Shown: in pieces, positions 1 to 40,427 of the stretch
Layout: each line of letters starts with the position of its first letter
Numbering within the stretch: position 1 is the first letter of the stretch
NCBI GenBank assembly: GCA_004431415.1
Contig: QPMI01000251.1
Span: 42,859-106,858, forward strand
Direction: 5' to 3'
Source: Cyanophora paradoxa CCMP329
Lineage: Eukaryota > Plantae > Glaucophyta
DNA length: 64,000 nucleotides
The notes under the pieces: model-generated
The model's input: only the letters and a program-made list of their open reading frames with translations
Databases searched by the model: none
Told to the model about the DNA's origin: nothing
Translations under genes and position numbers: made by a program

Positions 1-3000
1 GGTACGACGTGCGGGTGTGGGGCATGCCGGAGGGCGACAAGGTGCCGGTGGTGGCGGATGGTTTGAAGGTGACGACTCGCGCCCTGAATGCAGGTGAGCC
101 GCGGGCTTCCCGCTTTTGCGTCTGCGCCGGCCTTGCTGGCACGATAGTACGGTGATCTTCGATTGCGAGCACGCGGATGTTGAGCGTGCAATAGAGTGTG
201 CAACGAGAAGCCCGCGTTCGCGAGCTGACTGGCTCTGGGCGCGCCCGCAGGCGAAAAGCCGGCGTTGTTCGAGGCGCAGCCGGCGCAGCACTTCTACTAC
301 CGCCTGTCGACGCACTCGTCGCCGGTAACGGTGCAGCTGGCCGAGCTCGCGGGCGGCGGGTCGGTCGTCGATCTGTGGAACGCAATCAAGCGCCTGACGT
401 ACTACTCGCTGCCGGCCGCCGACAAGCCGCGGCTCGCGCTCGCGAGCGGCGAGGTCCTGAAGGTGCGCCGAGGCGCTGCGTTCCGCGTCCGCGCCCGCCC
501 AGTGTCGTGTGGCGCAGATGCACGAGAGGGACGGTGCGGCGGTGCCGCTGCAGTCGACCCCGGCTCAGGCGGGGGCGGTGCTGGAGGCGGGCGCGACGTG
601 CTACATGAGCGTGTCGGCGAGCTACAGCACGCGGGGCAAGGCGGCGGAGGGCCGGGACGTGTACGTGTCGTGGGCGCTGAACGAGAAGTGGAAAGAGAAG
701 GAGCCGCCTGTCTTCAACGAGATCTACGTGGAGCTGTGGGACGAGAGGACGCCCGAGCAGCGGGCGGAGTGGACGCTGCCGGCGAAGCACGGCGGGGTGG
801 AGTTCAACGCGCTGCAGATGTTCGGGCTGGTGCTGCGATCGCGTGTGACGTGAGCCCTGGCGATGTTGTGGCGCGGGCAGCTCGAGGGGGTCGCTGACGT
901 GGGTGCAGGTACTGCTTGCGGGTGTGGGGACGGTACGAGAGTGGGGCGCTGCCTGGGGAGACGAAGATCAACATTGGATCCCTGTCCTCCGGTGCGCTGC
1001 GCAGCCACGGGAGGGACGTCAGTGGCGTTGCTGACGGGAGAGACGGCCGCCCCGCGCGCAGGCGACGTGGAGCCGGCGGACGAGGCGATCCTCGCGAAGC
1101 CGGCGACGGCGTTCTTCGTGGCGCACGGGACGACGACGATGAAGTGGATCCAGCTCGCCAGCGGCGCCTCGACTCTCGGTCTCAAACAGGCGGTCGAGCG
1201 GGCGATGGGCCTCTCCGCGAACCGCAGGCGGCTGCGCATCGCGATGCCGGATGGCGAAGTTGTGCAGGCGTGCACCAGCTGCTCGCCGCCGTGCTTGGCG
1301 TTCAGTCACTCACGCCGTCCGCGCGCAGCCGTACTCGGCAGATGCGAAGGAGATACCGCTCGCGAAGACGCCCCTGAAACCGGGCAGCATCCTCACCGCC
1401 AAAGACCTCGGCGATTTCTACCTGCACTCCTGCCAATCTTCGTCGGGGCCGGTGTGGATCCACTGGGACCTTAACGGCCATCCGTCCGACGTCAAGGAGA
1501 AGCCGAAGCTCGCGTCCACGACGGTCGAGCTGTGGACGCAGGGCGCTGAGCGGAAGTGTGTCGGGGCGTGGAAGGTGCCGGCGAGAGAAGGCAACCTCGT
1601 GTTCGACAGGCTCATATTGCACTGGGGCACGATGAAGCCGTCCACCTCGTGCGTCGCGCATTGCACACCGGGCCGCGCCGTGATGCCTTCACGTCTGAAC
1701 TGCGCCGGCGTTGACCGCGAGAACGCTCGTGCAGGTACGACGTGCGGGTGTGGGGCATGCCGGAGGGCGACAAGGTGCCGGTGGTGGCGGATGGTTTGAA
1801 GGTGACGACTCGCGCCCTGAATGCAGGTGAGCCGCGGGCTTCCCGCTTTTGCGTCTGCGCCGGCCTTGCTGGCACGATAGTACGGTGATCTTCGATTGCG
1901 TGCACGCGGATGTTGAGCGTGCAATAGAGTGTGCAACGAGAAGCCCGCGTTCGCGAGCTGACTGGCTCTGGGCGCGCCCGCAGGCGAAAAGCCGGCGTTG
2001 TTCGAGGCGCAGCCGGCGCAGCACTTCTACTACCGCCTGTCGACGCACTCGTCGCCGGTAACGGTGCAGCTGGCCGAGCTCGCGGGCGGCGGGTCGGTCG
2101 TCGATCTGTGGAACGCAATCAAGCGCCTGACGTACTACTCGCTGCCGGCCGCCGACAAGCCGCGGCTCGCGCTCGCGAGCGGCGAGGTCCTGAAGGTGCG
2201 CCGAGGCGCTGCGTTCCGCGTCCACGCCCGCCCAGTGTTGTGTGGCGCAGATGCACGAGAGGGACGGTGCGGCGGTGCCGCTGCAGTCGACCCCGGCTCA
2301 GGCGGGGGCGGTGCTGGAGGCGGGCGCGACGTGCTACATGAGCGTGTCGGCGAGCTACAGCACGCGGGGCAAGGCGGCGGAGGGCCGGGACGTGTACGTG
2401 TCGTGGGCGCTGAACGAGAAGTGGAAAGAGAAGGAGCCGCCTGTCTTCAACGAGATCTACGTGGAGCTGTGGGACGAGAGGACGCCCGAGCAGCGGGCGG
2501 AGTGGACGCTGCCGGCGAAGCACGGCGGGTGGAGTTCAACGCGCTGCAGATGTTCGGGCTGGTGCTGCGATCGCGTGTGACGTGAGCCCTGGCGATGTTG
2601 TGGCGCGGGCAGCTCGAGGGGTCGCTGACGTGGGTGCAGGTACTGCTTGCGGGTGTGGGGACGGTACGAGAGTGGGGCGCTGCCTGGGGAGACGAAGATC
2701 AACATTGGATCCCTGTCCTCCGGTGCGCTGCGCAGCCACGGGAGGGACGTCAGTGGCGTTGCTGACGGGAGAGACGGCCGCCCCGCGCGCAGGCGACGTG
2801 GAGCCGGCGGACGAGGCGATCCTCGCGAAGCCGGCGACGGCGTTCTTCGTGGCGCACGGGACGACGACGATGAAGTGGATCCAGCTCGCCAGCGGCGCCT
2901 CGACTCTCGGTCTCAAACAGGCGGTCGAGCGGGCGATGGGCCTCTCCGCGAACCGCAGGCGGCTGCGCATCGCGATGCCGGATGGCGAAGTTGTGCAGGC

Positions 3001-6000
3001 GTGCACCAGCTGCTCGCCGCCGTGCTTGGCGTTCAGTCACTCACGCCGTCCGCGCGCAGCCGTACACGAAGGACGCGACGGAGATCCCGCTCGCCAAGAC
3101 GCCCGCAAAGTCGGGCAGCATTCTCGTCGCGCGGGACCTCGGCGAGTACTACCTCAGCATCGGGACCAGCTACGAGGGCCCCGTGTATGTCTATTGGTCG
3201 CTCAACGGGCAGCCGTCCGACGCGAAGGCGAAGCCGAAGCTCGCGCACGTGATGGTCGAGCTGTGGACGCAGGGCGCAGAGAGCAAGCGTGTGGGGCTGT
3301 GGAAGGTGCCCGCGTCCGAGGGAAGCGTCGTGTTCAACCAGGTCGTGCTGCACTGGGGCACGATGAAGCCTTCTACGCAGTGCGCGCGGCAGTGCTGCGC
3401 GCTCGCGATTTCCATGCTGCATCTTCACCAGGGGATGCCTGATCACTCTACGTGCCCGCGCAGGTACGGCGTGCGGGTGTGGACGATTCCGGAGCTGGAG
3501 GGCGAAACAGTGCCGCTGGTGTCGGACATCGTGGGCAAGAAGACGCGCGCCCTAAACTCGGGTGAGTGCCGTGCAGCGGGCTATAGAAGCGCGTGCTCCA
3601 TTCGTGAACTGCACGGTTCTCACGATGCGCTCTCGCCTCGCTCGTCCCCGCAGGAGAGACGCCCGCGCTTTTCAACTCGCAGCCCGACCTGCACCTCTTC
3701 TACCGGCGGACGGGTGACAGCTCGCCGGTGACGCTGCAGCTGGCCGAGATGGCAGAGGGCGCGACGGGTGTCGACCTCACTACCATGATCAAGCGCGTCT
3801 CCGTGTACTCGGTTCCAGAGGCTGCAAAGCAGCAGCTGTCTCTCGCAAGCGGCGACGCGATCAAGGTTCGTCGTATTCTACTCTCGATGCCGGATCGCCG
3901 ATCGGTTTACTCGACGTGCAGATGTACGCGGCGGACGGCACGCCTGTGCAGCTCACGGCGTCGGGTGTCACTCGGGTGTGGTAGTGGCCATCGGCGGGAG
4001 TTTCTACATGAGCGCGTCAGCCGGTTTCAGCTCGCGAAGCAAAGCGGTGGAGGGGCGAGACGTGACGGTCTCATGGCCCTCTTGGGGAGGCGAAAGGATC
4101 AGGGCCGCCCGTCTTCCACGAGATGTACGTGGAGCTGTGGGAGGAGAAGACACCGGAGACGCGAGCCGAGTGGACGCTGCCTGCGAAGCACGGCGAGGTG
4201 CAGTTCAGCGCGCTGCAGATGTTCGGGCTGGTGCTGCGGTCAAGCACGACGTGAGCCGGGTCGATTGACGAAGCGCTGGAAGGCGATGGCTGATGCCGCT
4301 GCGCGGCACGCAGGTACTGCGTGCGAGTGTGGGGCCGGTACGAGCAGGGCTCGCTCACGGCGGAGACGAAGCTCTCCATCGGGTCCCTGTCGTCGGGTTC
4401 GTCCCTTGCCGTGCTGCTTTCGCATTCCGAGCGTATTGCCCGAAAGGCTGATCTCGTTGCGCAGGCGACGTGGAGCCGGCGGACGAGGCGATCCTCGCGA
4501 AGCCGGCGACGGCGTTCTTCGTGGCGCACGGGACGACGACGATGAAGTGGATCCAGCTCGCCAGCGGCGCCTCGACTCTCGGTCTCAAACAGGCGGTCGA
4601 GCGGGCGATGGGCCTCTCCGCGAACCGCAGGCGGCTGCGCATCGCGATGCCGGATGGCGAAGTTGTGCAGGCGTGCACCAGCTGCTCGCCGCCGTGCTTG
4701 GCGTTCAGTCACTCACGCCGTCCGCGCGCAGCCGTACTCGGCAGATGCGAAGGAGATACCGCTCGCGAAGACGCCCCTGAAACCGGGCAGCATCCTCACC
4801 GCCAAAGACCTCGGCGATTTCTACCTGCACTCCTGCCAATCTTCGTCGGGGCCGGTGTGGATCCACTGGGACCTTAACGGCCATCCGTCCGACGTCAAGG
4901 AGAAGCCGAAGCTCGCGTCCACGACGGTCGAGCTGTGGACGCAGGGCGCTGAGCGGAAGTGTGTCGGGGCGTGGAAGGTGCCGGCGAGAGAAGGCAACCT
5001 CGTGTTCGACAGGCTCATATTGCACTGGGGCACGATGAAGCCGTCCACCTCGTGCGTCGCGCATTGCACACCGGGCCGCGCCGTGATGCCTTCACGTCTG
5101 AACTGCGCCGGCGTTGACCGCGAGAACGCTCGTGCAGGTACGACGTGCGGGTGTGGGGCATGCCGGAGGGCGACAAGGTGCCGGTGGTGGCGGATGGTTT
5201 GAAGGTGACGACTCGCGCCCTGAATGCAGGTGAGCCGCGGGCTTCCCGCTTTTGCGTCTGCGCCGGCCTTGCTGGCACGATAGTACGGTGATCTTCGATT
5301 GCGTGCACGCGGATGTTGAGCGTGCAATAGAGTGTGCAACGAGAAGCCCGCGTTCGCGAGCTGACTGGCTCTGGGCGCGCCCGCAGGCGAAAAGCCGGCG
5401 TTGTTCGAGGCGCAGCCGGCGCAGCACTTCTACTACCGCCTGTCGACGCACTCGTCGCCGGTAACGGTGCAGCTGGCCGAGCTCGCGGGCGGCGGGTCGG
5501 TCGTCGATCTGTGGAACGCAATCAAGCGCCTGACGTACTACTCGCTGCCGGCCGCCGACAAGCCGCGGCTCGCGCTCGCGAGCGGCGAGGTCCTGAAGGT
5601 GCGCCGAGGCGCTGCGTTCCGCGTCCGCGCCTGCCCAGTGTCGTGTGGCGCAGATGCACGAGAGGGACGGTGCGGCGGTGCCGCTGCAGTCGACCCCGGC
5701 TCAGGCGGGGGCGGTGCTGGAGGCGGGCGCGACGTGCTACATGAGCGTGTCGGCGAGCTACAGCACGCGGGGCAAGGCGGCGGAGGGCCGGGACGTGTAC
5801 GTGTCGTGGGCGCTGAACGAGAAGTGGAAAGAGAAGGAGCCGCCTGTCTTCAACGAGATCTACGTGGAGCTGTGGGACGAGAGGACGCCCGAGCAGCGGG
5901 CGGAGTGGACGCTGCCGGCGAAGCACGGCGGGGTGGAGTTCAACGCGCTGCAGATGTTCGGGCTGGTGCTGCGATCGCGTGTGACGTGAGCCCTGGCGAT

Positions 6001-9000
6001 GTTGTGGCGCGGGCAGCTCGAGGGGGTCGCTGACGTGGGTGCAGGTACTGCTTGCGGGTGTGGGGACGGTACGAGAGTGGGGCGCTGCCTGGGGAGACGA
6101 AGATCAACATTGGATCCCTGTCCTCCGGTGCGCTGCGCAGCCACGGGAGGGACGTCAGTGGCGTTGCTGACGGGAGGGACTGCCGCCCCGCGCGCAGGCG
6201 ACGTGGAGCCGGCGGACGAGGCGATCCTCGCGAAGCCGGCGACGGCGTTCTTCGTGGCGCACGGGACGACGACGATGAAGTGGATCCAGCTCGCCAGCGG
6301 CGCCTCGACTCTCGGTCTCAAACAGGCGGTCGAGCGGGCGATGGGCCTCTCCGCGAACCGCAGGCGGCTGCGCATCGCGATGCCGGATGGCGAAGTTGTG
6401 CAGGCGTGCATCAGCTGCTCGCCGCCGTGCTTGGCGTTCAGTCACTCACGCCGTCCGCGCGCAGCCGTACACGAAGGACGCGACGGAGATCCCGCTCGCC
6501 AAGACGCCCGCAAAGTCGGGCAGCATTCTCGTCGCGCGGGACCTCGGCGAGTACTACCTCAGCGTCGGGACCAGCTACGAGGGCCCCGTGTATGTCTATT
6601 GGTCGCTCATCGGGCAGCCGTCCGACGCGAAGGCGAAGCCGAAGCTCGCGCACGTGATGGTCGAGCTGTGGACGCAGGGCGCAGAGAGCAAGCGTGTGGG
6701 GCTGTGGAAGGTGCCCGCGTCCGAGGGAAGCGTCGTGTTCAACCAGGTCGTGCTGCACTGGGGCACGATGAAGCCTTCTACGCAGTGCGCGCGGCAGTGC
6801 TGCGCGCTCGCGATTTCCATGCTGCATCTTCACCAGGGGATGCCTGATCACTCTACGTGCCCGCGCAGGTACGGCGTGCGGGTGTGGACGATTCCGGAGC
6901 TGGAGGGCGAAACAGTGCCGCTGGTGTCGGACATCGTGGGCAAGAAGACGCGCGCCCTAAACTCGGGTGAGTGCCGTGCAGCGGGCTATAGAAGCGCGTG
7001 CTCCATTCGTGAACTGCACGGTTCTCACGATGCGCTCTCGCCTCGCTCGTCCCCGCAGGAGAGACGCCCGCGCTTTTCAACTCGCAGCCCGACCTGCACC
7101 TCTTCTACCGGCGGACGGGTGACAGCTCGCCGGTGACGCTGCAGCTGGCCGAGATGGCAGAGGGCGCGACGGGTGTCGACCTCACTACCATGATCAAGCG
7201 CGTCTCCGTGTACTCGGTTCCAGAGGCTGCAAAGCAGCAGCTGTCTCTCGCAAGCGGCGACGCGATCAAGGTTCGTCGTATTCTACTCTCGATGCCGGAT
7301 CGCCGATCGGTTTACTCGACGTGCAGATGTACGCGGCGGACGGCACGCCTGTGCAGCTCACGGCGTCGGGTGTCACTCGGGGTGTGGTAGTGGCCATCGG
7401 CGGGAGTTTCTACATGAGCGCGTCAGCCGGTTTCAGCTCGCGAAGCAAAGCGGTGGAGGGGCGAGACGTGACGGTCTCATGGGCCCTCTTGGGGGAGGCG
7501 AAAGGATCAGGGCCGCCCGTCTTCCACGAGATGTACGTGGAGCTGTGGGAGGAGAAGACACCGGAGACGCGAGCCGAGTGGACGCTGCCTGCGAAGCACG
7601 GCGAGGTGCAGTTCAGCGCGCTGCAGATGTTCGGGCTGGTGCTGCGGTCAAGCACGACGTGAGCCGGGTCGATTGACGAAGCGCTGGAAGGCGATGGCTG
7701 ATGCCGCTGCGCGGCACGCAGGTACTGCGTGCGAGTGTGGGGCCGGTACGAGCAGGGCTCGCTCACGGCGGAGACGAAGCTCTCCATCGGATCCCTGTCG
7801 TCGGGTTCGTCCCTTGCCGTGCTGCTTTCGCATTCCGAGCGTATTGCCCGAAAGGCTGATCTCGTTGCGCAGGCGACGTGGAGCCGGCGGACGAGGCGAT
7901 CCTCGCGAAGCCGGCGACGGCGTTCTTCGTGGCGCACGGGACGACGACGATGAAGTGGATCCAGCTCGCCAGCGGCGCCTCGACTCTCGGTCTCAAACAG
8001 GCGGTCGAGCGGGCGATGGGCCTCTCCGCGAACCGCAGGCGGCTGCGCATCGCGATGCCGGATGGCGAAGTTGTGCAGGCGTGCACCAGCTGCTCGCCGC
8101 CGTGCTTGGCGTTCAGTCACTCACGCCGTCCGCGCGCAGCCGTACTCGGCAGATGCGAAGGAGATACCGCTCGCGAAGACGCCCCTGAAACCGGGCAGCA
8201 TCCTCACCGTCAAAGACCTCGGCGATTTCTATCTGCACTCCTGCCAATCTTCGTCGGGGCCGGTGTGGATCCACTGGGACCTTAACGGCCATCCGTCCGA
8301 CGTCAAGGAGAAGCCGAAGCTCGCGTCCACGACGGTCGAGCTGTGGACGCAGGGCGCTGAGCGGAAGTGTGTCGGGGCGTGGAAGGTGCCGGCGAGAGAA
8401 GGCAACCTCGTGTTCGACAGGCTCATATTGCACTGGGGCACGATGAAGCCGTCCACCTCGTACGTCGCGCGTTGCACGCCGGGCCGCGCCGTGATGCCTT
8501 CACGTCTGAACTGCGCCGGCGTTGACCGCGAGAACGCTCGTGCAGGTACGACGTGCGGGTGTGGGGCATGCCGGAGGGCGACAAGGTGCCGGTGGTGGCG
8601 GATGGTTTGAAGGTGACGACTCGCGCCCTGAATGCAGGTGAGCCGCGGGCTTCCCGCTTTTGCGTCTGCGCCGGCCTTGCTGGCACGATAGTACGGTGAT
8701 CTTCGATTGCGAGCACGCGGATGTTGAGCGTGCAATAGAGTGTGCAACGAGAAGCCCGCGTTCGCGAGCTGACTGGCTCTGGGCGCGCCCGCAGGCGAAA
8801 AGCCGGCGTTGTTCGAGGCGCAGCCGGCGCAGCACTTCTACTACCGCCTGTCGACGCACTCGTCGCCGGTAACGGTGCAGCTGGCCGAGCTCGCGGGCGG
8901 CGGGTCGGTCGTCGATCTGTGGAACGCAATCAAGCGCCTGACGTACTACTCGCTGCCGGCCGCCGACAAGCCGCGGCTCGCGCTCGCGAGCGGCGAGGTC

Positions 9001-12000
9001 CTGAAGGTGCGCCGAGGCGCTGCGTTCCGCGTCCGCGCCTGCCCAGTGTCGTGTGGCACAGATGCACGAGAGGACGGTGCGGCGGTGCCGCTGCAGTCGA
9101 CCCCGGCTCAGGCGGGGCGGTGCTGGAGGCGGGCGCGACGTGCTACATGAGCGTGTCGGCGAGCTACAGCACGCGGGCAAGGCGGCGGAGGGCCGGGACG
9201 TGTACGTGTCGTGGGCGCTGAACGAGAAGTGGAAAGAGAAGGAGCCGCCTGTCTTCAACGAGATCTACGTGGAGCTGTGGGACGAGAGGACGCCCGAGCA
9301 GCGGGCGGAGTGGACGCTGCCGGCGAAGCACGGCGGGGTGGAGTTCAACGCGCTGCAGATGTTCGGGCTGGTGCTGCGATCGCGTGTGACGTGAGCCCTG
9401 GCGATGTTGTGGCGCGGGCAGCTCGAGGGGGTCGCTGACGTGGGTGCAGGTACTGCTTGCGGGTGTGGGACGGTACGAGAGTGGGCGCTGCCTGGGGAGA
9501 CGAAGATCAACATTGGATCCCTGTCCTCCGGTGCGCTGCGCAGCCACGGGAGGGACGTCAGTGGCGTTGCTGACGGGAGGGACTGCCGCCCCGCGCGCAG
9601 GCGACGTGGAGCCGGCGGACGAGGCGATCCTCGCGAAGCCGGCGACGGCGTTCTTCGTGGCGCACGGGACGACGACGATGAAGTGGATCCAGCTCGCCAG
9701 CGGCGCCTCGACTCTCGGTCTCAAACAGGCGGTCGAGCGGGCGATGGGCCTCTCCGCGAACCGCAGGCGGCTGCGCATCGCGATGCCGGATGGCGAAGTT
9801 GTGCAGGCGTGCATCAGCTGCTCGCCGCCGTGCTTGGCGTTCAGTCACTCACGCCGTCCGCGCGCAGCCGTACACGAAGGACGCGACGGAGATCCCGCTC
9901 GCCAAGACGCCCGCAAAGTCGGGCAGCATTCTCGTCGCGCGGGACCTCGGCGAGTACTACCTCAGCGTCGGACCAGCTACGAGGGCCCGTGTATGTCTAT
10001 TGGTCGCTCATCGGGCAGCCGTCCGACGCGAAGGCGAAGCCGAAGCTCGCGCACGTGATGGTCGAGCTGTGGACGCAGGGCGCAGAGAGCAAGCGTGTGG
10101 GGCTGTGGAAGGTGCCCGCGTCCGAGGGAAGCGTCGTGTTCAACCAGGTCGTGCTGCACTGGGGCACGATGAAGCCTTCTACGCAGTGCGCGCGGCAGTG
10201 CTGCGCGCTCGCGATTTCCATGCTGCATCTTCACCAGGGGATGCCTGATCACTCTACGTGCCCGCGCAGGTACGGCGTGCGGGTGTGGACGATTCCGGAG
10301 CTGGAGGGCGAAACAGTGCCGCTGGTGTCGGACATCGTGGGCAAGAAGACGCGCGCCCTAAACTCGGGTGAGTGCCGTGCAGCGGGCTATAGAAGCGCGT
10401 GCTCCATTCGTGAACTGCACGGTTCTCACGATGCGCTCTCGCCTCGCTCGTCCCCGCAGGAGAGACGCCCGCGCTTTTCAACTCGCAGCCCGACCTGCAC
10501 CTCTTCTACCGGCGGACGGGTGACAGCTCGCCGGTGACGCTGCAGCTGGCCGAGATGGCAGAGGGCGCGACGGGTGTCGACCTCACTACCATGATCAAGC
10601 GCGTCTCCGTGTACTCGGTTCCAGAGGCTGCAAAGCAGCAGCTGTCTCTCGCAAGCGGCGACGCGATCAAGGTTCGTCGTATTCTACTCTCGATGCCGGA
10701 TCGCCGATCGGTTTACTCGACGTGCAGATGTACGCGGCGGACGGCACGCCTGTGCAGCTCACGGCGTCGGGTGTCACTCGGGTGTGGTAGTGGCCATCGG
10801 CGGGAGTTTCTACATGAGCGCGTCAGCCGGTTTCAGCTCGCGAAGCAAAGCGGTGGAGGGCGAGACGTGACGGTCTCATGGGCCCTCTTGGGGGAGGCGA
10901 AAGGATCAGGGCCGCCCGTCTTCCACGAGATGTACGTGGAGCTGTGGGAGGAGAAGACACCGGAGACGCGAGCCGAGTGGACGCTGCCTGCGAAGCACGG
11001 CGAGGTGCAGTTCAGCGCGCTGCAGATGTTCGGGCTGGTGCTGCGGTCAAGCACGACGTGAGCCGGGTCGATTGACGAAGCGCTGGAAGGCGATGGCTGA
11101 TGCCGCTGCGCGGCACGCAGGTACTGCGTGCGAGTGTGGGGCCGGTACGAGCAGGGCTCGCTCACGGCGGAGACGAAGCTCTCCATCGGATCCCTGTCGT
11201 CGGGTTCGTCCCTTGCCGTGCTGCTTTCGCATTCCGAGCGTATTGCCCGAAAGGCTGATCTCGTTGCGCAGGCGACGTGGAGCCGGCGGACGAGGCGATC
11301 CTCGCGAAGCCGGCGATGGCCTTCTTCGTGGCGCACGGGACGACGACGATGAAGTGGATCCAGCTCGCCAGCGGCGCCTCGACTCTCGGTCTCAAACAGG
11401 CGGTCGAGCGGGCGATGGGCCTCTCCGCGAACCGCAGGCGGCTGCGCATCGCGATGCCGGATGGCGAAGTTGTGCAGGCGTGCACCAGCTGCTCGCCGCC
11501 GTGCTTGGCGTTCAGTCACTCACGCCGTCCGCGCGCAGCCGTACTCGGCAGATGCGAAGGAGATACCGCTCGCGAAGACGCCCCTGAAACCGGGCAGCAT
11601 CCTCACCGTCAAAGACCTCGGCGATTTCTATCTGCACTCCTGCCAATCTTCGTCGGGGCCGGTGTGGATCCACTGGGACCTTAACGGCCATCCGTCCGAC
11701 GTCAAGGAGAAGCCGAAGCTCGCGTCCACGACGGTCGAGCTGTGGACGCAGGGCGCTGAGCGGAAGTGTGTCGGGGCGTGGAAGGTGCCGGCGAGAGAAG
11801 GCAACCTCGTGTTCGACAGGCTCATATTGCACTGGGGCACGATGAAGCCGTCCACCTCGTACGTCGCGCGTTGCACGCCGGCCGCGCCGTGATGCCTTCA
11901 CGTCTGAACTGCGCCGGCGTTGACCGCGAGAACGCTCGTGCAGGTACGACGTGCGGGTGTGGGGCATGCCGGAGGGCGACAAGGTGCCGGTGGTGGCGGA

Positions 12001-30000: not shown

Positions 30001-33000
30001 CAATGGGCGTCGAAGCGAACCGCAAGAAACTGCGGATCATCACCGACGACGGCAAGGAAGTGCAGGTCCGCTGCTTCTGCTTCCCGTCGTGCCGAGCGTG
30101 CAGATACTAACGCCGCTCGCGCGCAGCCGTACACAAAGGAGGCGACGGAGATCCCGCTCGCCAAGACGCCCGCAAAGTCGGGCAGCATTCTCAGCGTCAC
30201 GGATCTCGGCGCGTACCACCTTAGCATCGGGACCAGCAGCGAGGGCCCCATGTATGTCTCGTGGTCTCTCAACGGCCAGCCGTCCGACGCGAAGGCGAAG
30301 CCGAAGCTCGCGCACGTGATGGTCGAGCTGTGGACGCAGGGAGCGGAGGGCAAGCGCGAGGGGCTGTGGAAGGTGCCGGCGTGCGAGGGCAACCTCGTGT
30401 TCAACCAGGTCGTGCTACACTGGGGCACGATGAAGCCTTCTACGCAGTGCGTGCTGCATCCGATGATCTCTCTGCCCTCGCGTTCCGAATCGCGTTCGTG
30501 CTGCATGGATACCGGGTAATGCCTGATTGCTCCGGGCGGCCACGCAGGTACAGTATGCGGGTGTGGACGATTCCGGAGCTGGAGGGCGAGACGGTGCCGC
30601 TGGTGTCCGACTTTATCAACAAGAAGACGCGCGCCCTGAACTCGGGTGAGTGCCGTGCCACTGGTTGCAGACGGGTCTTCGTCTCACGATGCGCTTTCGC
30701 CTCGTCTGCCCCTGCAGGAGAGACGCCCGCGCTCTTCGACGCGCAGCCCGACCTGCACCTCTTCTACCGGCGCGCGTCAGACACGTCAACGGTGACGCTG
30801 CAGCTGGCTGAGATGGCGGACGGCGCGACGGGTGTCGACCTCACCACCATGATCAAGCGCGTCTCCGCGTACACAGTGCCGGACGCTGCAAAGCAGCGCC
30901 TGTCGCTTGCAAGCGGCAATGCCATCAAGGTTCGTCGTATACTGCGAGTCTCTTCTTTAGAATTCAATGTCGGACGCACAGCCCGTTTACACAACGTGCA
31001 GATGTACGCGACGGACGGCACGCCGGTGCCGCTTACGGCGTCGGGCGTAAAGCCGGGTGTGGTAGTGGCGGTGGGCGGAACGTTCTTCCTGAGCGCGTCA
31101 TCCAGCTTCGGCACTCGCGGCAAAGCAGCGGAGGGCCGGGACGTGTATGTCTCGTGGTCGATCACGGGGGAGACGGGCGGGGCCGATCTGCCCGTCTTCA
31201 ACGAGATCTACGTGGAGCTGTGGGAGGAGAAGACACCGGGGACGCGAGCCGAGTGGACGCTGCCTGCGAAGCACGCTGAGGTGCAGTTCAGCTCGCTGCA
31301 GATGTTCGGGCTGGTGCTGCGGTCAAGCACGACGTGAGCCCGGTCGACGAAGCGCTGGAAGGCGATGGCTGATGCCGCTGCGCGGCACGCAGGTACTGCG
31401 TGCGGGTGTGGGGCCGGTACGAGCAGGGCTCGCTCACGGCCGAGACGAAGCTCTCCATCGGGTCCCTGTCGTCGGGTTCGTCCCTTGCCGTGCTGCTTTC
31501 GCATTCCGAGCGTATTGCCCGAAAGGCTGATCTCGTTGCGCAGGCGACGTGGAGCCGGCGGACGAGGCGATCCTCGCGAAGCCGGCGACGGCGTTCTTCG
31601 TGGCGCACGGGACGACGACGATGAAGTGGATCCAGCTCGCCAAGGGCGCCACCGCCGTCGGCCTCACGCGGGCGATCGAGCGCGCAATGGGCGTCGAAGC
31701 GAACCGCAAGAAACTGCGCATCATCACCGACGACGGCAAGGAAGTGCAGGTCGCTCACTCGTTGTTCGGGTTCCGAACGTGCCAGCGCTCACGCCAGCCG
31801 CGTGCAGACCTACACGAAGGACGCGACGGAGATCCTGCTCGCCACGAGGCCTCCAAAGCCAAGCGGAATCAAGCGCGCGAAAAGAGAGAAGGTCAAGGCG
31901 AAGCGCGCGAATCCGGCCTTCGATGCGACGGACGACGTCGAAGAAGTGCAGGCGGGCCACCTTGGCTTTCGCCTCGCTGAGAATGTGAGAGCTTACGCTG
32001 AGAAGCAGCCGGACGCAAAGGACGCGACGGAGACCTCGCTGGCCGAGACGGTCGCGACGCCGGGCGAAACGGAGCTTGCGAGCGAAGAGACTGCAACGGA
32101 GATGCGCGCGGAGCCGGCCACAGATGCGACGGAAGCTCCGGCCGGAGAGGTGCTGGTAAAGCCTGGCACAATCCTCAGCGTCACCGATCTCGGCGTGTGC
32201 TACCTGAAGCCCACCGTCAACGAGAGCGGGCCCTTCTACGTCTACTGGGCAATCGAGGGCCAGCCGTCGGGCGCAAAGGAGAAGCCGAAGCTCGCGCACG
32301 TGATGGTCGAGCTGTGGACGCAGGGCGCACAGAGCATGCGGCTCGGGCTGTGGAAGGTGCCGACCAGCGAGGCGAGCGTCGTGTTTGACAAAGTCATGCT
32401 TTCCTGGGGCACAATCAAGCCGTCCACTGCGTGCGCCGCCTGTGGCTGCCGCGCTGCGCCGCGTGTCTATTGCGTTGACTGAAAGCACGCGCGAGCAGTT
32501 ACGGCGTGCGGCTGTGGGGCATTCCAGTGGGCGAGACCGTCCCGCTGGTGGCGGACGTCGTGAGCAAGAAGACGCGCGCCCTGAACTCGGGTGCGCGCCG
32601 TGCAGATCGTCATCGAGGCGCTTTAGTCTCTAAGCGTTTGCCCTTCCGCCGCCACAGGAGAGACGCCCGCACTCTTCGACGCGCAGCCGAAGCTGCACTT
32701 TTTCTACCGGCGCGCGGCAGACAGCTCGCCAGCTGCCATACAGCTTGTAGAAGTGGCCGACGGGGCGACCGGCGTCGACTTGAGGAACTCAATCAAGCGC
32801 CTTTCTACGTACACGGTTCCCGACGCAGCAAAGCAGCGGCTCTCGCTGAGCAACGGCGACCCTATCAAGGTGCTCTCCGTGCTGCCGGACTGTATAGTCG
32901 CAGCGTGGCCCCTGATTCCTTTGCGCGACGTGCAGATGTACGCCACGGACGGCACGCCGGTGCCGCTATCGGCTTCCGGAGCGAAGCCGGGGGTGGTGGT

Positions 33001-36000
33001 GGCCGTGGGCGAGACGTGTTACCTGAGCGTGTCGTGCAGCTTTGGCTCGCGGAGCAAGACTGCGGAGGGCCGAGATGTCAATGTATCGTGGGCGTTGAAC
33101 GACAAGGCGAAGGACCCGTCGCCGCCCGCCTTCACCAAAATGTACGTTGAGCTGTGGGAAGAGAAGATACCGGAGAAGCGGGCCGAGTGGACGCTGCCTG
33201 CGAAGCACGGCGAGCCACCGGTGGAGTTCAGCGCGCTGCAGATGTTCGGGCTGGTGCTGCGGTCAAGCACGACGTGAGCCTGGTCGATTGATGTAGCGCT
33301 TAAAGGCGATGGCTGATGCCGCTGCGCGGCACGCAGGTACTGCGTGCGGGTGTGGGGCCGGTACGAGCAGGGCTCGCTCACGGCCGAGACGAAGTTCTCC
33401 ATCGGGTCCCTGTCGTCGGGTTCGTCCGTTGCCGTGTTGGCATTTTGCGAGTCTGTGTGGCATGCGCACGCTGATTGGAGTGCCCGCCCCACGCGCAGGC
33501 GACACGGAGCCGGCGGACGAGGCGATCCTCGCGAAGCCGGCGACGGCGTTCTTCGTGGCGCACGGGACGACGACGATGAAGTGGATCCAGCTCGCCAAGG
33601 GCGCCACCGCCGTCGGCCTCACGCGGGCGATCGAGCGCGCAATGGGCGTCGAAGCGAACCGCAAGAAACTGCGGATCATCACCGACGACGGCAAGGAAGT
33701 GCAGGTCGCTCACTCGTTGTTCGGGTTCCGAACGTGCCAGCGCTCACGCCAGCCGCGTGCAGACCTACACGAAGGACGCGACGGAGATCCTGCTCGCCAC
33801 GAGGCCTCCAAAGCCAAGCGGAATCAAGCGCGCGAAAAGAGAGAAGGTCAAGGCGAAGCGCGCGAATCCGGCCTTCGATGCGACGGACGACGTCGAAGAA
33901 GTGCAGGCGGGCCACCTTGGCTTTCGCCTCGCTGAGAATGTGAGAGCTTACGCTGAGAAGCAGCCGGACGCAAAGGACGCGACGGAGACCTCGCTGGCCG
34001 AGACGGTCGCGACGCCGGGCGAAACGGAGCCCGCGAGCGAAGAGACTGCAACGGAGATGCGCGCGGAGCCGGCCACAGATGCGACGGAAGCTCCGGCCGG
34101 AGAGGTGCTGGTAAAGCCTGGCACAATCCTCAGCGTCACCGATCTCGGCGTGTGCTACCTGAAGCCCACCGTCAACGAGAGCGGGCCCTTCTACGTCTAC
34201 TGGGCAATCGAGGGCCAGCCGTCGGGCGCAAAGGAGAAGCCGAAGCTCGCGCACGTGATGGTCGAGCTGTGGACGCAGGGCGCAGAGAGCATGCGGCTCG
34301 GGCTGTGGAAGGTGCCGACCAGCGAGGCGAGCGTCGTGTTTGACAAAGTCATGCTTTCCTGGGGCACAATCAAGCCGTCCACTGCGTGCGCCGCCTGTGG
34401 CTGCCGCGCTGCGCCACGTGTCTATTGCGTTGACTGAAAGCACGCGCGAGCAGTTACGGCGTGCGGCTGTGGGGCATTCCAGTGGGCGAGACCGTCCCGC
34501 TGGTGGCGGACGTCGTGAGCAAGAAGACGCGCGCCCTGAACTCGGGTGCGCGCCGTGCAGATCGTCATCGAGGCGCTTTAGTCTCTAAGCGTTTGCCCTT
34601 CCGCCGCCACAGGAGAGACGCCCGCACTCTTCGACGCGCAGCCGAAGCTGCACTTTTTCTACCGGCGCGCGGCAGACAGCTCGCCAGCTGCCATACAGCT
34701 TGTAGAAGTGGCCGACGGGGCGACCGGCGTCGACTTGAGGAACTCAATCAAGCGCCTTTCTGCGTACACGGTTCCCGACGCAGCAAAGCAGCGGCTCTTG
34801 ATGAGCAACGGCGACCCTATCAAGGTGCTCTCCGTGCTGCCGGACTGTATAGTCGCAGCGTGGCCCCTGATTCCTTTGCGCGACGTGCAGATGTACGCCA
34901 CGGACGGCACGCCGGTGCCGCTATCGGCTTCCGGAGCGAAGCCGGGGGTGGTGGTGGCCGTGGGCGAGACGTGTTACCTGAGCGTGTCGTGCAGCTTTGG
35001 CTCGCGGAGCAAGACTGCGGAGGGCCGAGATGTCAATGTATCGTGGGCGTTGAACGACAAGGCGAAGGACCCGTCGCCGCCCGCCTTCACCAAAATGTAC
35101 GTTGAGCTGTGGGAAGAGAAGATACCGGAGAAGCGGGCCGAGTGGACGCTGCCGGCGAAGCACGGCGAGCCACCGGTGGAGTTCAGCGCGCTGCAGATGT
35201 TCGGGCTGGTGCTGCGGTCAAGCACGACGTGAGCCTGGTCGATTGATGTAGCGCTTAAAGGCGATGGCTGATGCCGCTGCGCGGCACGCAGGTACTGCGT
35301 GCGGGTGTGGGGCCGGTACGAGCAGGGCTCGCTCACGGCGGAGACGAAGTTCTCCATCGGGTCCCTGTCGTCGGGTTCGTCCGTTGCCGTGTTGGCATTT
35401 TGCGAGTCTGTGTGGCATGCGCACGCTGATTGGAGTGCCCGCCCCACGCGCAGGCGACACGGAGCCGGCGGACGAGGCGATCCTCGCGAAGCCGGCGATG
35501 GCCTTCTTCGTGGCGCACGGGACGACGACGATGAAGTGGATCCAGCTCGCCAAGGGCGCCACCGCCGTCGGCCTCACGCGGGCGATCGAGCGCGCAATGG
35601 GCGTCGAAGCGAACCGCAAGAAACTGCGGATCATCACCGACGACGGCAAGGAAGTGCAGGTCGCTCACTCGTTGTTCGGGTTCCGAACGTGCCAGCGCTC
35701 ACGCCAGCCGCGTGCAGACCTACACGAAGGACGCGACGGAGATCCCGCTCGCCACGAGGCCTCCAAAGCCAAGCGGAATCAAGCGCGCGAAAAGAGAGAA
35801 GGTCAAGGCGAAGCGCGCGAATCCGGCCTTCGATGCGACGGACGACGTCGAAGAAGTGCAGGCGGGCCACCTTGGCTTTCGCCTCGCTGAGAATGTGAGA
35901 GCTTACGCTGAGAAGCAGCCGGACGCAAAGGACGCGACGGAGACCTCGCTGGCCGAGACGGTCGCGACGCCGGGCGAAACGGAGCCCGCGAGCGAAGAGA

Positions 36001-39000
36001 CTGCAACGGAGATGCGCGCGGAGCCGGCCACAGATGCGACGGAAGCTCCGGCCGGAGAGGTGCTGGTAAAGCCTGGCACAATCCTCAGCGTCACCGATCT
36101 CGGCGTGTGCTACCTGAAGCCCACCGTCAACGAGAGCGGGCCCTTCTACGTCTACTGGGCAATCGAGGGCCAGCCGTCGGGCGCAAAGGAGAAGCCGAAG
36201 CTCGCGCACGTGATGGTCGAGCTGTGGACGCAGGGCGCAGAGAGCATGCGGCTCGGGCTGTGGAAGGTGCCGACCAGCGAGGCGAGCGTCGTGTTTGACA
36301 AAGTCATGCTTTCCTGGGGCACAATCAAGCCGTCCACTGCGTGCGCCGCCTGTGGCTGCCGCGCTGCGCCACGTGTCTATTGCGTTGACTGAAAGCACGC
36401 GCGAGCAGTTACGGCGTGCGGCTGTGGGGCATTCCAGTGGGCGAGACCGTCCCGCTGGTGGCGGACGTCGTGAGCAAGAAGACGCGCGCCCTGAACTCGG
36501 GTGCGCGCCGTGCAGATCGTCATCGAGGCGCTTTAGTCTCTAAGCGTTTGCCCTTCCGCCGCCACAGGAGAGACGCCCGCACTCTTCGACGCGCAGCCGA
36601 AGCTGCACTTTTTCTACCGGCGCGCGGCAGACAGCTCGCCAGCTGCCATACAGCTTGTAGAAGTGGCCGACGGGGCGACCGGCGTCGACTTGAGGAACTC
36701 AATCAAGCGCCTTTCTGCGTACACGGTTCCCGACGCAGCAAAGCAGCGGCTCTTGATGAGCAACGGCGACCCTATCAAGGTGCTCTCCGTGCTGCCGGAC
36801 TGTATAGTCGCAGCGTGGCCCCTGATTCCTTTGCGCGACGTGCAGATGTACGCCACGGACGGCACGCCGGTGCCGCTATCGGCTTCCGGAGCGAAGCCGG
36901 GGGTGGTGGTGGCCGTGGACGAGACGTGTTACCTGAGCGTGTCGTGCAGCTTTGGCTCGCGGAGCAAGGCTGCGGAGGGCCGAGATGTCAATGTATCGTG
37001 GGCGTTGAACGACAAGGCGAAGGACCCGTCGCCGCCCGCCTTCACCAAAATGTACGTTGAGCTGTGGGAAGAGAAGATACCGGAGAAGCGGGCCGAGTGG
37101 ACGCTGCCGGCGAAGCACGGCGAGCCACCGGTGGAGTTCAGCGCGCTGCAGATGTTCGAGCTGGTGCTGCGGTCAAGCACGACGTGAGCCTGGTCGATTG
37201 ATGTAGCGCTTAAAGGCGACGGCTGACAGGCCCGCACAACGCGCAGGTACTGCGTGCGGGTGTGGGGCCGGTACGAGCAGGGCTCGCTCACGGCGGAGAC
37301 GAAGTTTACCATCGGGTCCCTGTCGTCGGGTTCGTCCGTTGCCGTGTTGGCATTTTGCGAGTCTGTGTGGCATGCGCACGCTGATTGGAGTGCCCGCCCC
37401 ACGCGCAGGCGACACGGAGCCGGCGGACGAGGCGATCCTCGCGAAGCCGGCGACGGCGTTCTTCGTGGCGCACGGGACGACGACGATGAAGTGGATCCAG
37501 CTCGCCAAGGGCGCCACCGCCGTCGGCCTCACGCGGGCGATCGAGCGCGCAATGGGCGTCGAAGCGAACCGCAAGAAACTGCGCATCATCACCGACGACG
37601 GCAAGGAAGTGCAGGTCCGCTGCTTCTGCTTCCCGTCGTGCCGAGCGTGCAGAAACTAACGCCGCTCGCGCGCAGCCGTACACAAAGGAGGCGACGGAGA
37701 TCCCGCTCGCTAAGACTCCCGCAAAGCCGGGCAGCATTCTCAGCGTCACGGATCTCGGCGCGTACCACCTTAGCATCGGGACCAGCAGCGAGGGCCCCAT
37801 GTATGTCTCGTGGTCTCTCAACGGCCAGCCGTCCGGCGCGAAGGCGAAGCCGAAGCTCGCGCACGTGATGGTCGAGCTGTGGACGCAGGGAGCGGAGGGC
37901 AAGCGCGAGGGGCTGTGGAAGGTGCCGGCGTGCGAGGGCAACCTCGTGTTCAACCAGGTCGTGCTACACTGGGGCACGATGAAGCCTTCTACGCAGTGCG
38001 TGCTGCATCCGATGATCTCTCTGCCCTCGCGTTCCGGATCGCGTTCGTGCTGCATGTATACCGGGTAATGCCTGATTGCTCCGGGCGGCCACGCAGGTAC
38101 AGCATGCGGGTGTGGACGATTCCGGAGCTGGAGGGCGAGACGGTGCCGCTGGTGTCCGACTTTATCAACAAGAAGACGCGCGCCCTGAACTCGGGTGAGT
38201 GCCGTGCCACTGTTTGCAGACGGGTCTTCGTCTCACGATGCGCTTTCGCCTCGTCTGCCCCTGCAGGAGAGACGCCCGCGCTCTTCGACGCGCAGCCCGA
38301 CCTGCACCTCTTCTACCGGCGCGCGTCAGACACGTCAACGGTGACGCTGCAGCTGGCTGAGATGGCGGACGGCGCGACGGGTGTCGACCTGCGAAATGCG
38401 ATCAAGCGCGTATCGGTCCATTCGGTTCCAGAGGCGCTGAGACAGCGCCTGTGGCTCGCAAGCGGAGAGGTCATCAAGGTACGCCTGTCTCTCTTATCCA
38501 ACTTACGACGCGTAGATGCCGAGTCTTCATTGTGCAGATGTACGACAAGGAGGGCGACGGCGTGCTGGTCTCGGCTTCAGGCGCAAAGCCGGGCTCTGTA
38601 GTGGCCGTGGGAGAGACATGCTACCTCAGCATATCGACGAGCTACAGCACGCGGGGCAAGGCGGCCGAGGGCCGGGACGTTACCGTCTCTTGGTCGATGT
38701 ATGACAAGGGGAAAGATCCGTTTGACTTCGTTGATATCTCCGTTGAAATGTGGGAGGAAAAGACACCGGAGAAGCGGGCCGAGTGGACACTGCCGACAAA
38801 GCACAACGGGGTAGAGTTCAGCGCGCTGCAGATGTTCGGGCTGGTGCTGCGGTCAAGCACGACGTGAGCCCGGTCGATTGACGAAGCACTGGAAGGCGAC
38901 GGCTGACAGGCCCGCACAACGCGCAGGTACTGCGTTCGCGTGCTGCATCGATACGATCAGGGTTCGGTCGTCGGGCAGGCAAAGCTCTCCATCGGGTCCC

Positions 39001-39083
39001 TGTCGTCCGGTTCGTCCTTTCCATCGATATCGATACTCGCCGCAGTGGCAACATGCTGACTGAAAAGCTCAACCCTCACGCAG
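1..39083 (+). repeat. Tandem array of 22 complete 1.67-1.96 kb units plus a partial first unit
   Basis: The exon encoding GD(V/T)EPADEAILAKPA recurs at about 1062, 2793, 4465, 6198, 7873, 9601, 11272, 13004, 14679, 16411, 18086, 19758, 21430, 23114, 24798, 26485, 28172, 29860, 31544, 33499, 35454, 37409 and 39083. Same-type units are near-identical, including introns. Confidence 0.98.
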
Positions 39084-40164
39084 GGGACACGGAGCCGGCG
39101 GACGAAGCGATCCTCGCAAAGCCGGCAACAGCCTTTTTCGTGGCGCACGGGCCAACGACATTGAAGTGGATCCAGCTCTCCAAGACCGCAACTGGCCTCC
39201 ACTTCAACCAGGCAGTTGAGCGCGCGATGGGCCTCGAAGTAAACCGCTTCAAGCTGTTGATCACCACGCCAAGCAGCACGAATGTTGATGTCGAGGCATG
39301 CGCCTTTCCAACCGTGCAAACACTTCTGTCTGCGACTTACTTCTTTGTCGCAGCGCTATGCCGAAGACGGCGCCGTGCTCCCCCTTGGAAGCAGGCCCGC
39401 AAAGTCGGGCTCTCTTCTCACCATCGCGGCAAAGAAACTATGCACCATCTCGTCGTCTTTGGGTAGTGACAGCACCCGTCCTCTGACGATTAGCTGGAGC
39501 ATCTCATCTGGTGACGGCGGAGAGCCTCCGGAGGTGACAATAGAGCTGCAAGAGTTCGAGAAGCGGGATCGGCGCTTCGCTTGGAAAGTTCCAACTTCCG
39601 ACAACTCGACTCGAACCGGGAGACTGGATTTCGTGTGGGGCACAATGAGGCCGGCAACCAAGTAAGCCACCCTCTTACGCTCTCAGCATAACTTGTACGA
39701 ATACATTGCGCTCAGATACATTGTTCGGGTGCGAACAGTGGACCAGGGCTCGGTGGTGTCCGCCAGTGAATTGGAACACACGACGCGGCCCCTGAAATCA
39801 GGTGCGCTACCGTAGTACGGGGAATTCGCGTCGTACTCCCCACGTCTGGAATGTAACTCCTTGCGGCCCGGCAGGGGAGGCGGCTCCGAGCTGGGATAGG
39901 CAACCCGCCTGGCATTGCATTCTCCGGAGGCACAACGATAGCTCTCCTCTCTATCTGGCTGTCTTGGAGCTGCCCGACGACGCACCCGCTGTCGACCTGC
40001 TCACTGAGGTTCACCGCGTAACAAATTGGGGCTCTTCGCCAAGTTCGTACAGAATATACCTGCAAGACCGGAAAAAGCAGGTGGAGACGCACAAGAATGG
40101 ATCGGTGGTGCCGAAATCGGAGTTGGGGCTGAAGTCTGGACAGTTTGTAATTGTCCATTTCTAG
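1..40164 (+). CDS. Giant multi-exon protein (5' end outside window) of alternating ubiquitin-like and fibronectin type III-like domains, about 47 Ubl and 46 FN3 visible
   Basis: Six short introns per unit (five GT-AG, one GC-AG or GT-AG) join the exons in frame with no stop or new start between units. Ubl-like segment: FFVAHGTTTMKWIQLASGASTLGLKQAVERAMGLSANRRRLRI...[17 protein letters not shown]. FN3-like segment: VWIHW...VELW...WKVPA...MKPSTSYDVRVW (strand-B Trp and tyrosine corner). The only terminal stop is TAG at 40162-40164 after ...LKSGQFVIVHF. Scattered 1-bp losses in G/C runs break the frame in some units. Confidence 0.8.
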
Positions 40165-40427
40165 TCGTCGCAGGCATAGGCATGTATAGTTAGGCAGAGG
40201 CAACTATTAATTGGTTTCTTAGGCAGAGTGGCATGTATAGTTACCCAGCCACACTCATGTATAGTTCAACGGTTAGTAAGTAACCAGACGCATGCAGCTA
40301 TTGGCGCGCACCGAGCCCTCGGAGCTCTTTAGTTCACCGGTACCGAGTACCAGGGACTGAACAGCACATTCTACCCCCCTAGACATTTGTTCAATTTCTA
40401 GCATCGAAGTTCAGTAACTGCAGGCTG

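Follow-up and report, generated by a model that had tools for sequence, protein, structure and literature searches.

We analysed a 64,000-nt stretch of contig tig00001057 of the glaucophyte Cyanophora paradoxa (hereafter the window) and found that positions 1-40164 form, on the + strand, the 3' part of one gene. The gene carries a tandem array, running from base 1 to ~38,900 of the window, of modules that each consist of a predicted ubiquitin-like (Ubl) domain followed by a predicted FN3 domain. That this is a single gene with a Ubl-FN3 array architecture appears highly probable to us. There are 23 'a' modules and 23 'b' modules in the window, ~207 amino acids (aa) each, and a closing exon that encodes a Ubl domain only. 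The 'a' modules are 209 aa and the 'b' modules 206-208 aa long, the two types are 29% identical to each other, and one unit of the array comprises 209 + 206 = 415 aa in the domain order Ubl-FN3-Ubl-FN3. The exons total 29,818 nt, or ~9,946 codons with missing bases counted in, and both figures given in a first-pass annotation of the sequence, 415 aa per unit and ~10,000 aa overall, are therefore correct. Because the first exon in the window encodes the end of a 'b'-type FN3 domain, the array must extend past the 5' window edge, and the 5' end of the gene, including the N-terminus of the protein, lies outside the window.

The GC content is 65-68% across the first 38 kb of the window. The array has periods of 1,672-1,734 nt and 1,951-1,955 nt and a higher-order repeat of 3,407 nt; the dominant k-mer offsets are 1,684-1,688, 1,672, 1,733 and 1,955 nt. 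When the first 1,734 nt were used as a blastn query, 22 further copies were found, with identity falling from 95% to 75% toward the 3' end. The alternation of Ubl and FN3 domains is strict, as the first-pass annotation had claimed, but the modules are not uniform: three 'b' modules carry an insertion of ~80-100 aa in the Ubl domain (Table 1). The insertion amounts to ~80 aa after removal of a 57-nt intron and contains a basic K/R-rich stretch as well as degenerate copies of the adjoining loop. At the protein level there are 12 'a' and 14 'b' variants, with differences concentrated in loops; several units are protein-identical and others differ by up to ~50% in sequence. The linkers between modules (10-17 residues) are conserved, and the one that leads from the FN3 domain of 'a' to the Ubl domain of 'b' is, together with the first Ubl strand, nearly invariant across all variants. 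The array grew via tandem duplication, and the similarity of its units is maintained by unequal crossing-over or gene conversion.

Table 1. Features of the gene in the window, with the positions of exon joints in RNA and of frame-breaking deletions.
Feature	Position	Strand	Basis or remark
Whole gene part: 143 exons, 142 introns, 46 Ubl-FN3 modules and terminal Ubl	1..40164	+	tblastn exon table, splice-site inspection
First exon in window, last third of 'b'-type FN3	2..93	+	Identical to exon 1735-1826; AG acceptor ends at base 1
Example 'a' module, 209 aa; exons 251-462, 518-849, 909-991	251..991	+	
Example 'b' module, 206 aa; exons 1062-1267 (GC donor), 1329-1648, 1735-1826	1062..1826	+	
Five higher-order repeats of ~3,407 nt, two units (four modules) each; copies up to 100% identical	1735..18755	+	k-mer offsets, blastn
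Seven units of 1,671-1,688 nt, ~75-81% DNA identity to unit 1	18756..30547	+	
Three units of 1,951-1,955 nt, charged insertion in 'b' Ubl	30548..36408	+	g6695 alignment, RNA joints
Insertion exons, each split by a 57-nt in-frame GC-AG intron	31808-32430, 33763-34385, 35718-36340		
Last two units, most divergent; final 'b' module 39084-39801	36409..39801	+	
Terminal exon, complete Ubl-like domain in a single exon, TAG 40162-40164	39875..40164	+	Aligns with 'a'-type Ubls
3' untranslated region	40165..40414	+	RNA-like contigs end at ~40309-40414; depth collapses after 40400
RNA joints, last units	38478>38538, 39009>39084, 39295>39354, 39661>39716, 39801>39875		
Single-base deletions	2526, 3973, 4074, 4083, 9071, 9113, 9174, 9466, 9482, 9969, 9985	+	
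Single-base deletions, continued	10779, 10857, 15061, 18974, 19264, 20257, 20332, 20936, 26103, 27046	+	

Exons, introns and splice sites

The six exons of unit 1 were set by splice motifs and mapped on all units by tblastn, and each boundary was checked. When the three forward frames are translated, the coding segments switch frame at GT...AG boundaries, and at homologous positions all exons of all units are bounded by an AG acceptor and by a GT or GC donor. A module is encoded by three exons and a unit by six, with intron phases 1-0-2. We identified 142 introns of 54-157 nt, 126 of them GT-AG and 16 GC-AG, and all 142 splice-site pairs are intact. The count of 143 exons and 142 introns includes the three 57-nt introns within the insertion exons.

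The gene has an unusually high share of GC-AG introns. They are found at 31952-32008, 33907-33963, 35862-35918 and 39296-39353, and behind 12 donors of 'b' modules. The 12 donors, all GTGCAG/GC (slash at the exon end), belong to the first 'b' exon, lie between 1268 and 19964, and were multiplied through unit duplication. An in-phase GT two codons upstream of each would keep the frame likewise. We consider the GC donors credible because the same GTGCAG/GC motif is the donor of the 57-nt intron 35862-35918, which is supported by RNA.

Transcription and the public gene model

Sequencing runs from several studies contain ~62% of the words of 37400-40400, a share that by our estimate roughly equals the exonic fraction of this interval. 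We compared contigs of three RNA-like runs (three studies) and one DNA-like run with positions 35200-41199. In the three RNA-like runs, joints fall exactly at the predicted introns 35375-35453, 35660-35717, 36341-36408, 36780-36845, 37996-38096, 38479-38537, 39010-39083, 39662-39715 and 39802-39874. The RNA joints of introns 39296-39353 and 35862-35918 correspond to GC-AG introns after the shift stated by the tool. Joints 35659>35718 and 35861>35919 are present in the three RNA-like runs and absent from the DNA-like run, which is unspliced across the same region (one of its contigs, for example, spans 38848-40454). The unit-to-unit junction, singled out by the first-pass annotation as the place to look for RNA support, is carried by the RNA-like contigs of all three studies, over the last 5 kb of the gene. 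RNA contigs continue through the stop at 40164 to ~40414, where depth collapses, and this read-through shows that the C-terminus had been placed correctly.

Two long joints of ~2 kb, 35373>37408 and 35655>37672, were considered as candidates for module skipping by combinatorial splicing. We rejected them as ambiguous placements of ordinary junctions, since their short side is only 24-82 nt and the exons are near-identical between units.

The public model of this gene (EukProt EP00741 tig00001057_g6695.t1, hereafter g6695; 3,359 aa) is encoded by ~27180-40000. It is a truncated version whose first residue is an internal Met closely following the frameshift at 27046, and it retains the three 57-nt introns as coding sequence. 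Its last exon, 40828-41046, is joined to the gene by no RNA contig and is preceded by an interval of near-zero depth (40400-40800); this exon is probably an annotation artefact. The upstream models g6690-g6693 carry no annotation (supplement, PMC6704402).

Frame-breaking deletions in the assembly

The first-pass annotation described an array without a stop until 40164. This is false for the assembled sequence, in which 21 single-base deletions in 13 exons, from 2526 to 27046, break the frame, and the literal spliced frame stops after 625 codons. All 21 lie in homopolymers (18 in G and 3 in C runs), and the affected exons show 0 other mismatches relative to an intact sister exon. Real decay would also bring substitutions, insertions and indels outside homopolymers. 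Because the deletions are confined to G/C runs and accompanied by no other differences, we read them as long-read consensus errors and rejected the possibility that they are true mutations; judged from the sequence, they are probably PacBio consensus errors. PacBio RSII reads were assembled with Canu and Quiver, and the result was then corrected by majority with mapped Illumina reads (PMC6704402). Such correction is unreliable here because the repeats are near-identical, and as the affected copies are identical to intact ones, short reads are unable to decide on the deletions. The 3' 13 kb of the gene, which include unique sequence, are intact in frame.

A decaying pseudogene, or an assembly artefact with true frameshifts or an array expanded by the assembly, would be expected to carry frame-breaking deletions such as the 21 assembled here, and the public annotation does split the locus. 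Yet every one of the 21 is a homopolymer deletion free of substitutions, the intact 3' 13 kb are spliced and transcribed (RNA joints in the last 5 kb), the ratio of non-synonymous to synonymous divergence (dN/dS) is below 1, 142 of 142 splice-site pairs are intact, and contigs of the DNA-like run cover the region. We therefore regard this explanation as extremely unlikely.

Domain folds

The modules used for structure prediction were taken from g6695 and aligned with other modules, with exons of the window and with exons of a related contig from the Logan assemblies (see below); for upstream module types, each exon was searched on its own. AlphaFold2 predicted the 'a' module with a mean pLDDT of 73 and the 'b' module with 60 (FN3 halves 61-93, Ubl halves 43-77). 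Both models have a beta-beta-alpha-beta-beta-beta segment followed by seven strands, and the first segment has the beta-grasp topology of Ubl domains (beta-beta-alpha-beta-beta-(3-10)-beta, ~75-90 residues). DSSP assigned E17-22, E26-31, H41-49, E58-62 and E91-95 in the 'b' Ubl and E14-19, H39-49, E60-64, H82-85 and a strand starting at E92 in the 'a' Ubl.

Upon superposition, residues 10-96 of the 'a' model matched Rad60 SLD2 (3rcz_A; Z 9.0, 74/74 residues, root-mean-square deviation 2.5), the plexin-D1 Ubl (3h6n_A; Z 9.0) and the UHRF1/NP95 Ubl (2faz_B; Z 8.8). Residues 97-208 of the same model matched FN3 domains of fibronectin, leptin receptor and PTPRD with Z 9.7-10.2 (2gee_A 10.2, 8dh9_A 9.9, 6mfa_A 9.8). 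Residues 96-208 of the 'b' model also matched FN3 domains, with Z ~10 (6mfa_A, Z 10.2; 4gh7_B, Z 10.1). Foldseek matched the 'a' model to FN3 domains of tenascin, myomesin, integrin beta4 and titin, and the 'b' model to SUMO(Smt3)-fusion chains (E 5e-6) and FN3 monobodies; its FN3 matches had probability 1.00 and TM 0.6-0.72 by target. The beta-grasp and FN3 folds that the first-pass annotation expected of AlphaFold and Foldseek were thus returned. In the FN3 half, VSW (strand B) is conserved in every variant and the tyrosine-corner region reads (H)WGTMKPST.Y..RVW in 'b' and LVLRSSTTYC.RVW in 'a', a pattern that we take to be the FN3 consensus (Trp in strand B; Leu..Pro.Thr.Tyr..[RV]V in strands E-F).

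Similarity at the sequence level is marginal. Single exons gave no Pfam match at E up to 10, and the 'a' modules matched nothing in Pfam. One 'b' module matched Ubiquitin_2 (PF14560) with 14 bits (E 0.073), below the cut-off of 23.1, which was passed solely on summing repeated copies (23.9-32 bits). The last 'b' module matched fn3 (PF00041) with 18 bits (E 0.0035) alone and 25.4 bits (cut-off 25) within g6695 2600-3359, and no other module had an fn3 match in Pfam. As the copies are near-duplicates, summed Pfam scores do not count as independent evidence. Among all PDB sequences, a module profile found nothing at E up to 10. The assignment of each module as a Ubl beta-grasp domain followed by an FN3 sandwich, proposed in the first-pass annotation, is hence supported at the level of predicted folds, by AlphaFold, Foldseek and superposition, while single-domain support from Pfam is marginal.

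The Ubl domains do not end in a conserved diglycine: depending on the variant they end in GG, GA, GE or DLG and run directly into the FN3 domain, and the terminal Ubl ends in VIVHF and likewise has no diglycine. They are thus built-in, non-conjugatable Ubl domains and not modifiers. The terminal exon has no hydrophobic stretch (Kyte-Doolittle maximum 0.92 over 19 residues), in agreement with the earlier statement that a transmembrane helix or a glycosylphosphatidylinositol (GPI)-like tail is missing at the C-terminus.

With ~47 ubiquitin-like surfaces, the protein might act as a multivalent scaffold or decoy for ubiquitin- or SUMO-binding proteins, a role that the first-pass annotation named for ubiquitin-binding proteins and with which the predicted beta-grasp fold and its SUMO-like and Ubl structural matches would agree. 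Sequence similarity to ubiquitin and SUMO is, however, marginal (Pfam E 0.073 per domain; no PDB match by profile), so that conservation of a recognition patch cannot be claimed, and we find such a role very doubtful.

Selection and composition

We compared exons between unit types and found dN/dS of 0.17-0.6 in 33 of 34 comparisons (dS = 0 in the 34th). The most diverged copy of the linker and Ubl start shows 7 synonymous and 4 non-synonymous codon differences. A dN/dS below 1 between diverged unit types implies that the modules are kept as protein, and the protein is, by this measure of sequence divergence, under purifying selection. In the g6695 variants the isoelectric point alternates between acidic 'a' modules (5.25) and basic 'b' modules (8.6). 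There are 8 N-x-S/T sequons in 3,290 aa, and Cys makes up 0.67% of residues, ~one per module.

The repeats could also belong to a polyprotein precursor that is cut at the inter-module linkers and releases many Ubl-FN3 or a+b units, on the model of polyubiquitin or the nematode polyprotein antigens. The near-invariance of the FN3(a)-Ubl(b) linker and first Ubl strand, and the protein identity of several units, would suit a processed precursor. On the other hand, there is no conserved diglycine or dibasic site, and the units differ by up to ~50%, unlike those of single-product polyproteins; we judge processing of this kind to be quite improbable.

Relatives and earlier descriptions

A HMMER search with exon 1329-1646 against 1.84 billion representative proteins gave five hits; the credible matches in this database were g6695 and two fragments of one Logan contig, and nothing else. 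Matches to ENA proteins, to bacterial PKD-repeat proteins and to a START protein from a moth failed confirmation by a hidden Markov model of the module (full-sequence E 0.02-0.2), and we attributed them to repeat or composition artefacts or to an Ig-like similarity of a generic kind. A word-indexed search of 5.8 billion proteins with five modules, a region of g6695 and the module profile returned g6695 and a fragment from the Logan contig only. JGI metagenome scans with two exons found no relative. In the ESM Atlas there was no usable match by features, and matches by shape were generic FN3 proteins (TM 0.42-0.52 by query).

The Logan contig (L001, run SRR31724264) is 1,817 nt long, has ~80% DNA identity to the array and the same exon-intron layout. 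Its terminal bases repeat its opening bases, which indicates a collapsed tandem unit of roughly 1.8 kb. It derives either from an upstream, diverged stretch of this array or from a different Cyanophora strain or species.

In the literature we found no paper joining Cyanophora, ubiquitin-like and FN3, and none naming tig00001057. The earlier remark that no Ubl-FN3 co-polymer has been described agrees with these results: no paper that we found describes a giant protein of alternating Ubl and FN3 domains, and the protein searches returned no relative beyond g6695 and the Logan fragments. As far as we searched, the architecture is undescribed and without homologues.

Proposed function

In line with the titin-like filament or ruler of the first-pass annotation, we propose that the product may be an intracellular, very long modular rod that serves as a tether, scaffold or ruler, and assign this reading a probability of roughly 0.4. 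As in titin or obscurin, the chain would resemble beads on a string: each Ubl-FN3 pair would be a stiff bead, each linker of 10-17 residues a hinge or docking site, and the structure would repeat with every 415-aa a+b pair. Textbook domain sizes would give the part encoded in the window a length of ~0.3 micrometre. Ubl domains are known from cytosolic or nuclear proteins, and our lean toward an intracellular location comes from this, from the few sequons, the ~one Cys per module, the K/R-rich insertions and the lack of a C-terminal anchor.

Several points weigh against this proposal or temper it. FN3 arrays are a typical feature of extracellular proteins as well. That the FN3(a)-to-Ubl(b) linker is almost invariant points to a specific site and not to a passive hinge. 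The N-terminus, where a signal peptide or an effector domain would show, is encoded outside the window. The alignments behind the AlphaFold models were shallow (26-28 rows, many of them near-duplicates), and confidence in the models is modest, especially for the Ubl half. The copy number in the near-identical 3.4-kb repeat may be mis-assembled. Finally, the RNA comparison covers the last 5 kb of the gene; a single mRNA of at least 30 kb and transcription of the first 35 kb are inferred.

The beads could instead extend from the cell as a secreted or surface-anchored fibre, for example an adhesin, coat or matrix protein comparable to the giant adhesins of bacteria and the matrix proteins of animals. 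The FN3 half finds its best structural matches among extracellular FN3 domains, and tandem near-identical repeats are common in adhesins. No Ubl domains are known to us in secreted eukaryotic proteins, however, and N-glycosylation sequons are few, disulfide pairs are missing and the C-terminus has no anchor. An extracellular fibre seems to us distinctly unlikely.

A further possibility is that the array serves as the sensor or spacer of a giant MLKL-like protein of cell death or immunity, with a putative N-terminal four-helix-bundle executioner domain encoded ~13-15 kb upstream and near-identical repeats that evolve fast by unequal recombination, comparable to the fungal NLR-like repeat arrays. 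The repeats are indeed highly similar, the differences among the 12 'a' and 14 'b' variants are concentrated in loops, and a SARM1-like TIR gene is reported ~20 kb downstream (supplement, PMC6704402). But dN/dS is below 1 throughout, and Ubl-FN3 repeats occur in no known death or immune receptor, which leaves this role unlikely in our view. The specific form of it, in which the array would be the body of a protein of at least 13,000 aa with a membrane-attacking, MLKL-like four-helix bundle at its N-terminus, we consider more doubtful still. If true, it would represent a previously unknown type of algal death or immune receptor, in which a fast-recombining Ubl-FN3 array would replace the LRR, WD40 or TPR sensors found in known NLR-like proteins and the FN3 loops would be the variable binding surfaces.

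Rest of the window

Downstream of the gene, a short AT-rich segment at 41010-41043 is shared with contigs of depth ~10^4, from RNA-like and DNA runs, with loose ends on both sides; it is probably high-copy or low-complexity sequence. A tandem repeat occupies 42474-42883 (149-nt unit, 2.8 copies, 67% matches). Regions 46001-50000 and 62001-64000 have a GC content of 82-85%, as compared to 65% in the giant gene, and since open reading frames (ORFs) overlap there on both strands, ORF lists are meaningless in these two regions. A long ORF at 47359-49524 (+), in 82-83% GC, matches the HisKA phospho-acceptor domain (E 2.2e-7) and may belong to a histidine kinase gene. Rfam and tRNA scans of the window found nothing.

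A 416-aa ORF at 58374-59621 (+) matches Pfam Actin (E 1.6e-36). It is probably the 'actin-related protein 10-like' gene tig00001057_g6700, also 416 aa (supplement, PMC6704402). Trinity transcripts of g6700 also carry, on the opposite strand, an ORF for a SARM1-like TIR protein (supplement, PMC6704402).

Significance and comparison with known systems

If translated as one chain, the part of the protein encoded in the window alone would have a mass of ~1.1 MDa, with more upstream, which is very large for a unicellular eukaryote. To our knowledge it would be the first regular ubiquitin-like/FN3 co-polymer. It would mean that giant bead proteins also arose outside animals, from another pair of folds, and it would offer a natural system for the mechanics of alternating beta-grasp and sandwich domains. 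The gene also presents extreme concerted evolution inside coding sequence, with 3.4-kb higher-order repeats and 16 GC-AG introns spread through duplication. In the public data the locus is cut by homopolymer errors and has a wrong last exon and retained introns, which makes the protein invisible to comparative work.

The bacterial giant repeat adhesins (for example RTX extenders) resemble the array in that dozens of near-identical sandwich modules serve as a long extender, and an adhesin structure (6xi3, 'tetra-tandem repeat in extending region of large adhesion protein') was among the structural matches. Mub repeats have beta-grasp-like subdomains. In contrast to the bacterial adhesins, the gene described here is eukaryotic and intron-rich, and there is no detectable homology.

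Polyubiquitin (UBB/UBC) also consists of head-to-tail beta-grasp units in one ORF that undergo concerted evolution. The present array differs from it by the FN3 domains between units, the lack of a conserved diglycine, the divergence of units by up to ~50%, the intron-rich gene and the marginal similarity to ubiquitin. The SUMO-like domains of Rad60/RENi, the Ubl of UHRF1 and the Ubl/RBD of plexins are, like the Ubl domains of the array, non-conjugatable and built into larger proteins, and they gave Z 8.8-9.0 in superposition; these proteins have one to few Ubl domains, never dozens, and none alternates them with FN3.

The titin family (titin, obscurin and twitchin) differs from the array in its Ig I-set domains, kinase and PEVK-like spring, none of which was found here by Pfam and protein searches, nor was any sequence homology. 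The partner of FN3 in the array is a predicted ubiquitin-like beta-grasp domain, and the host is a unicellular glaucophyte without sarcomeres. At the same time, the two share an organization as beads on a string of at least 1 MDa, with FN3 domains, a two-module super-repeat and many small exons of symmetric phase, and FN3 domains of titin and myomesin were among the Foldseek matches to the 'a' model.

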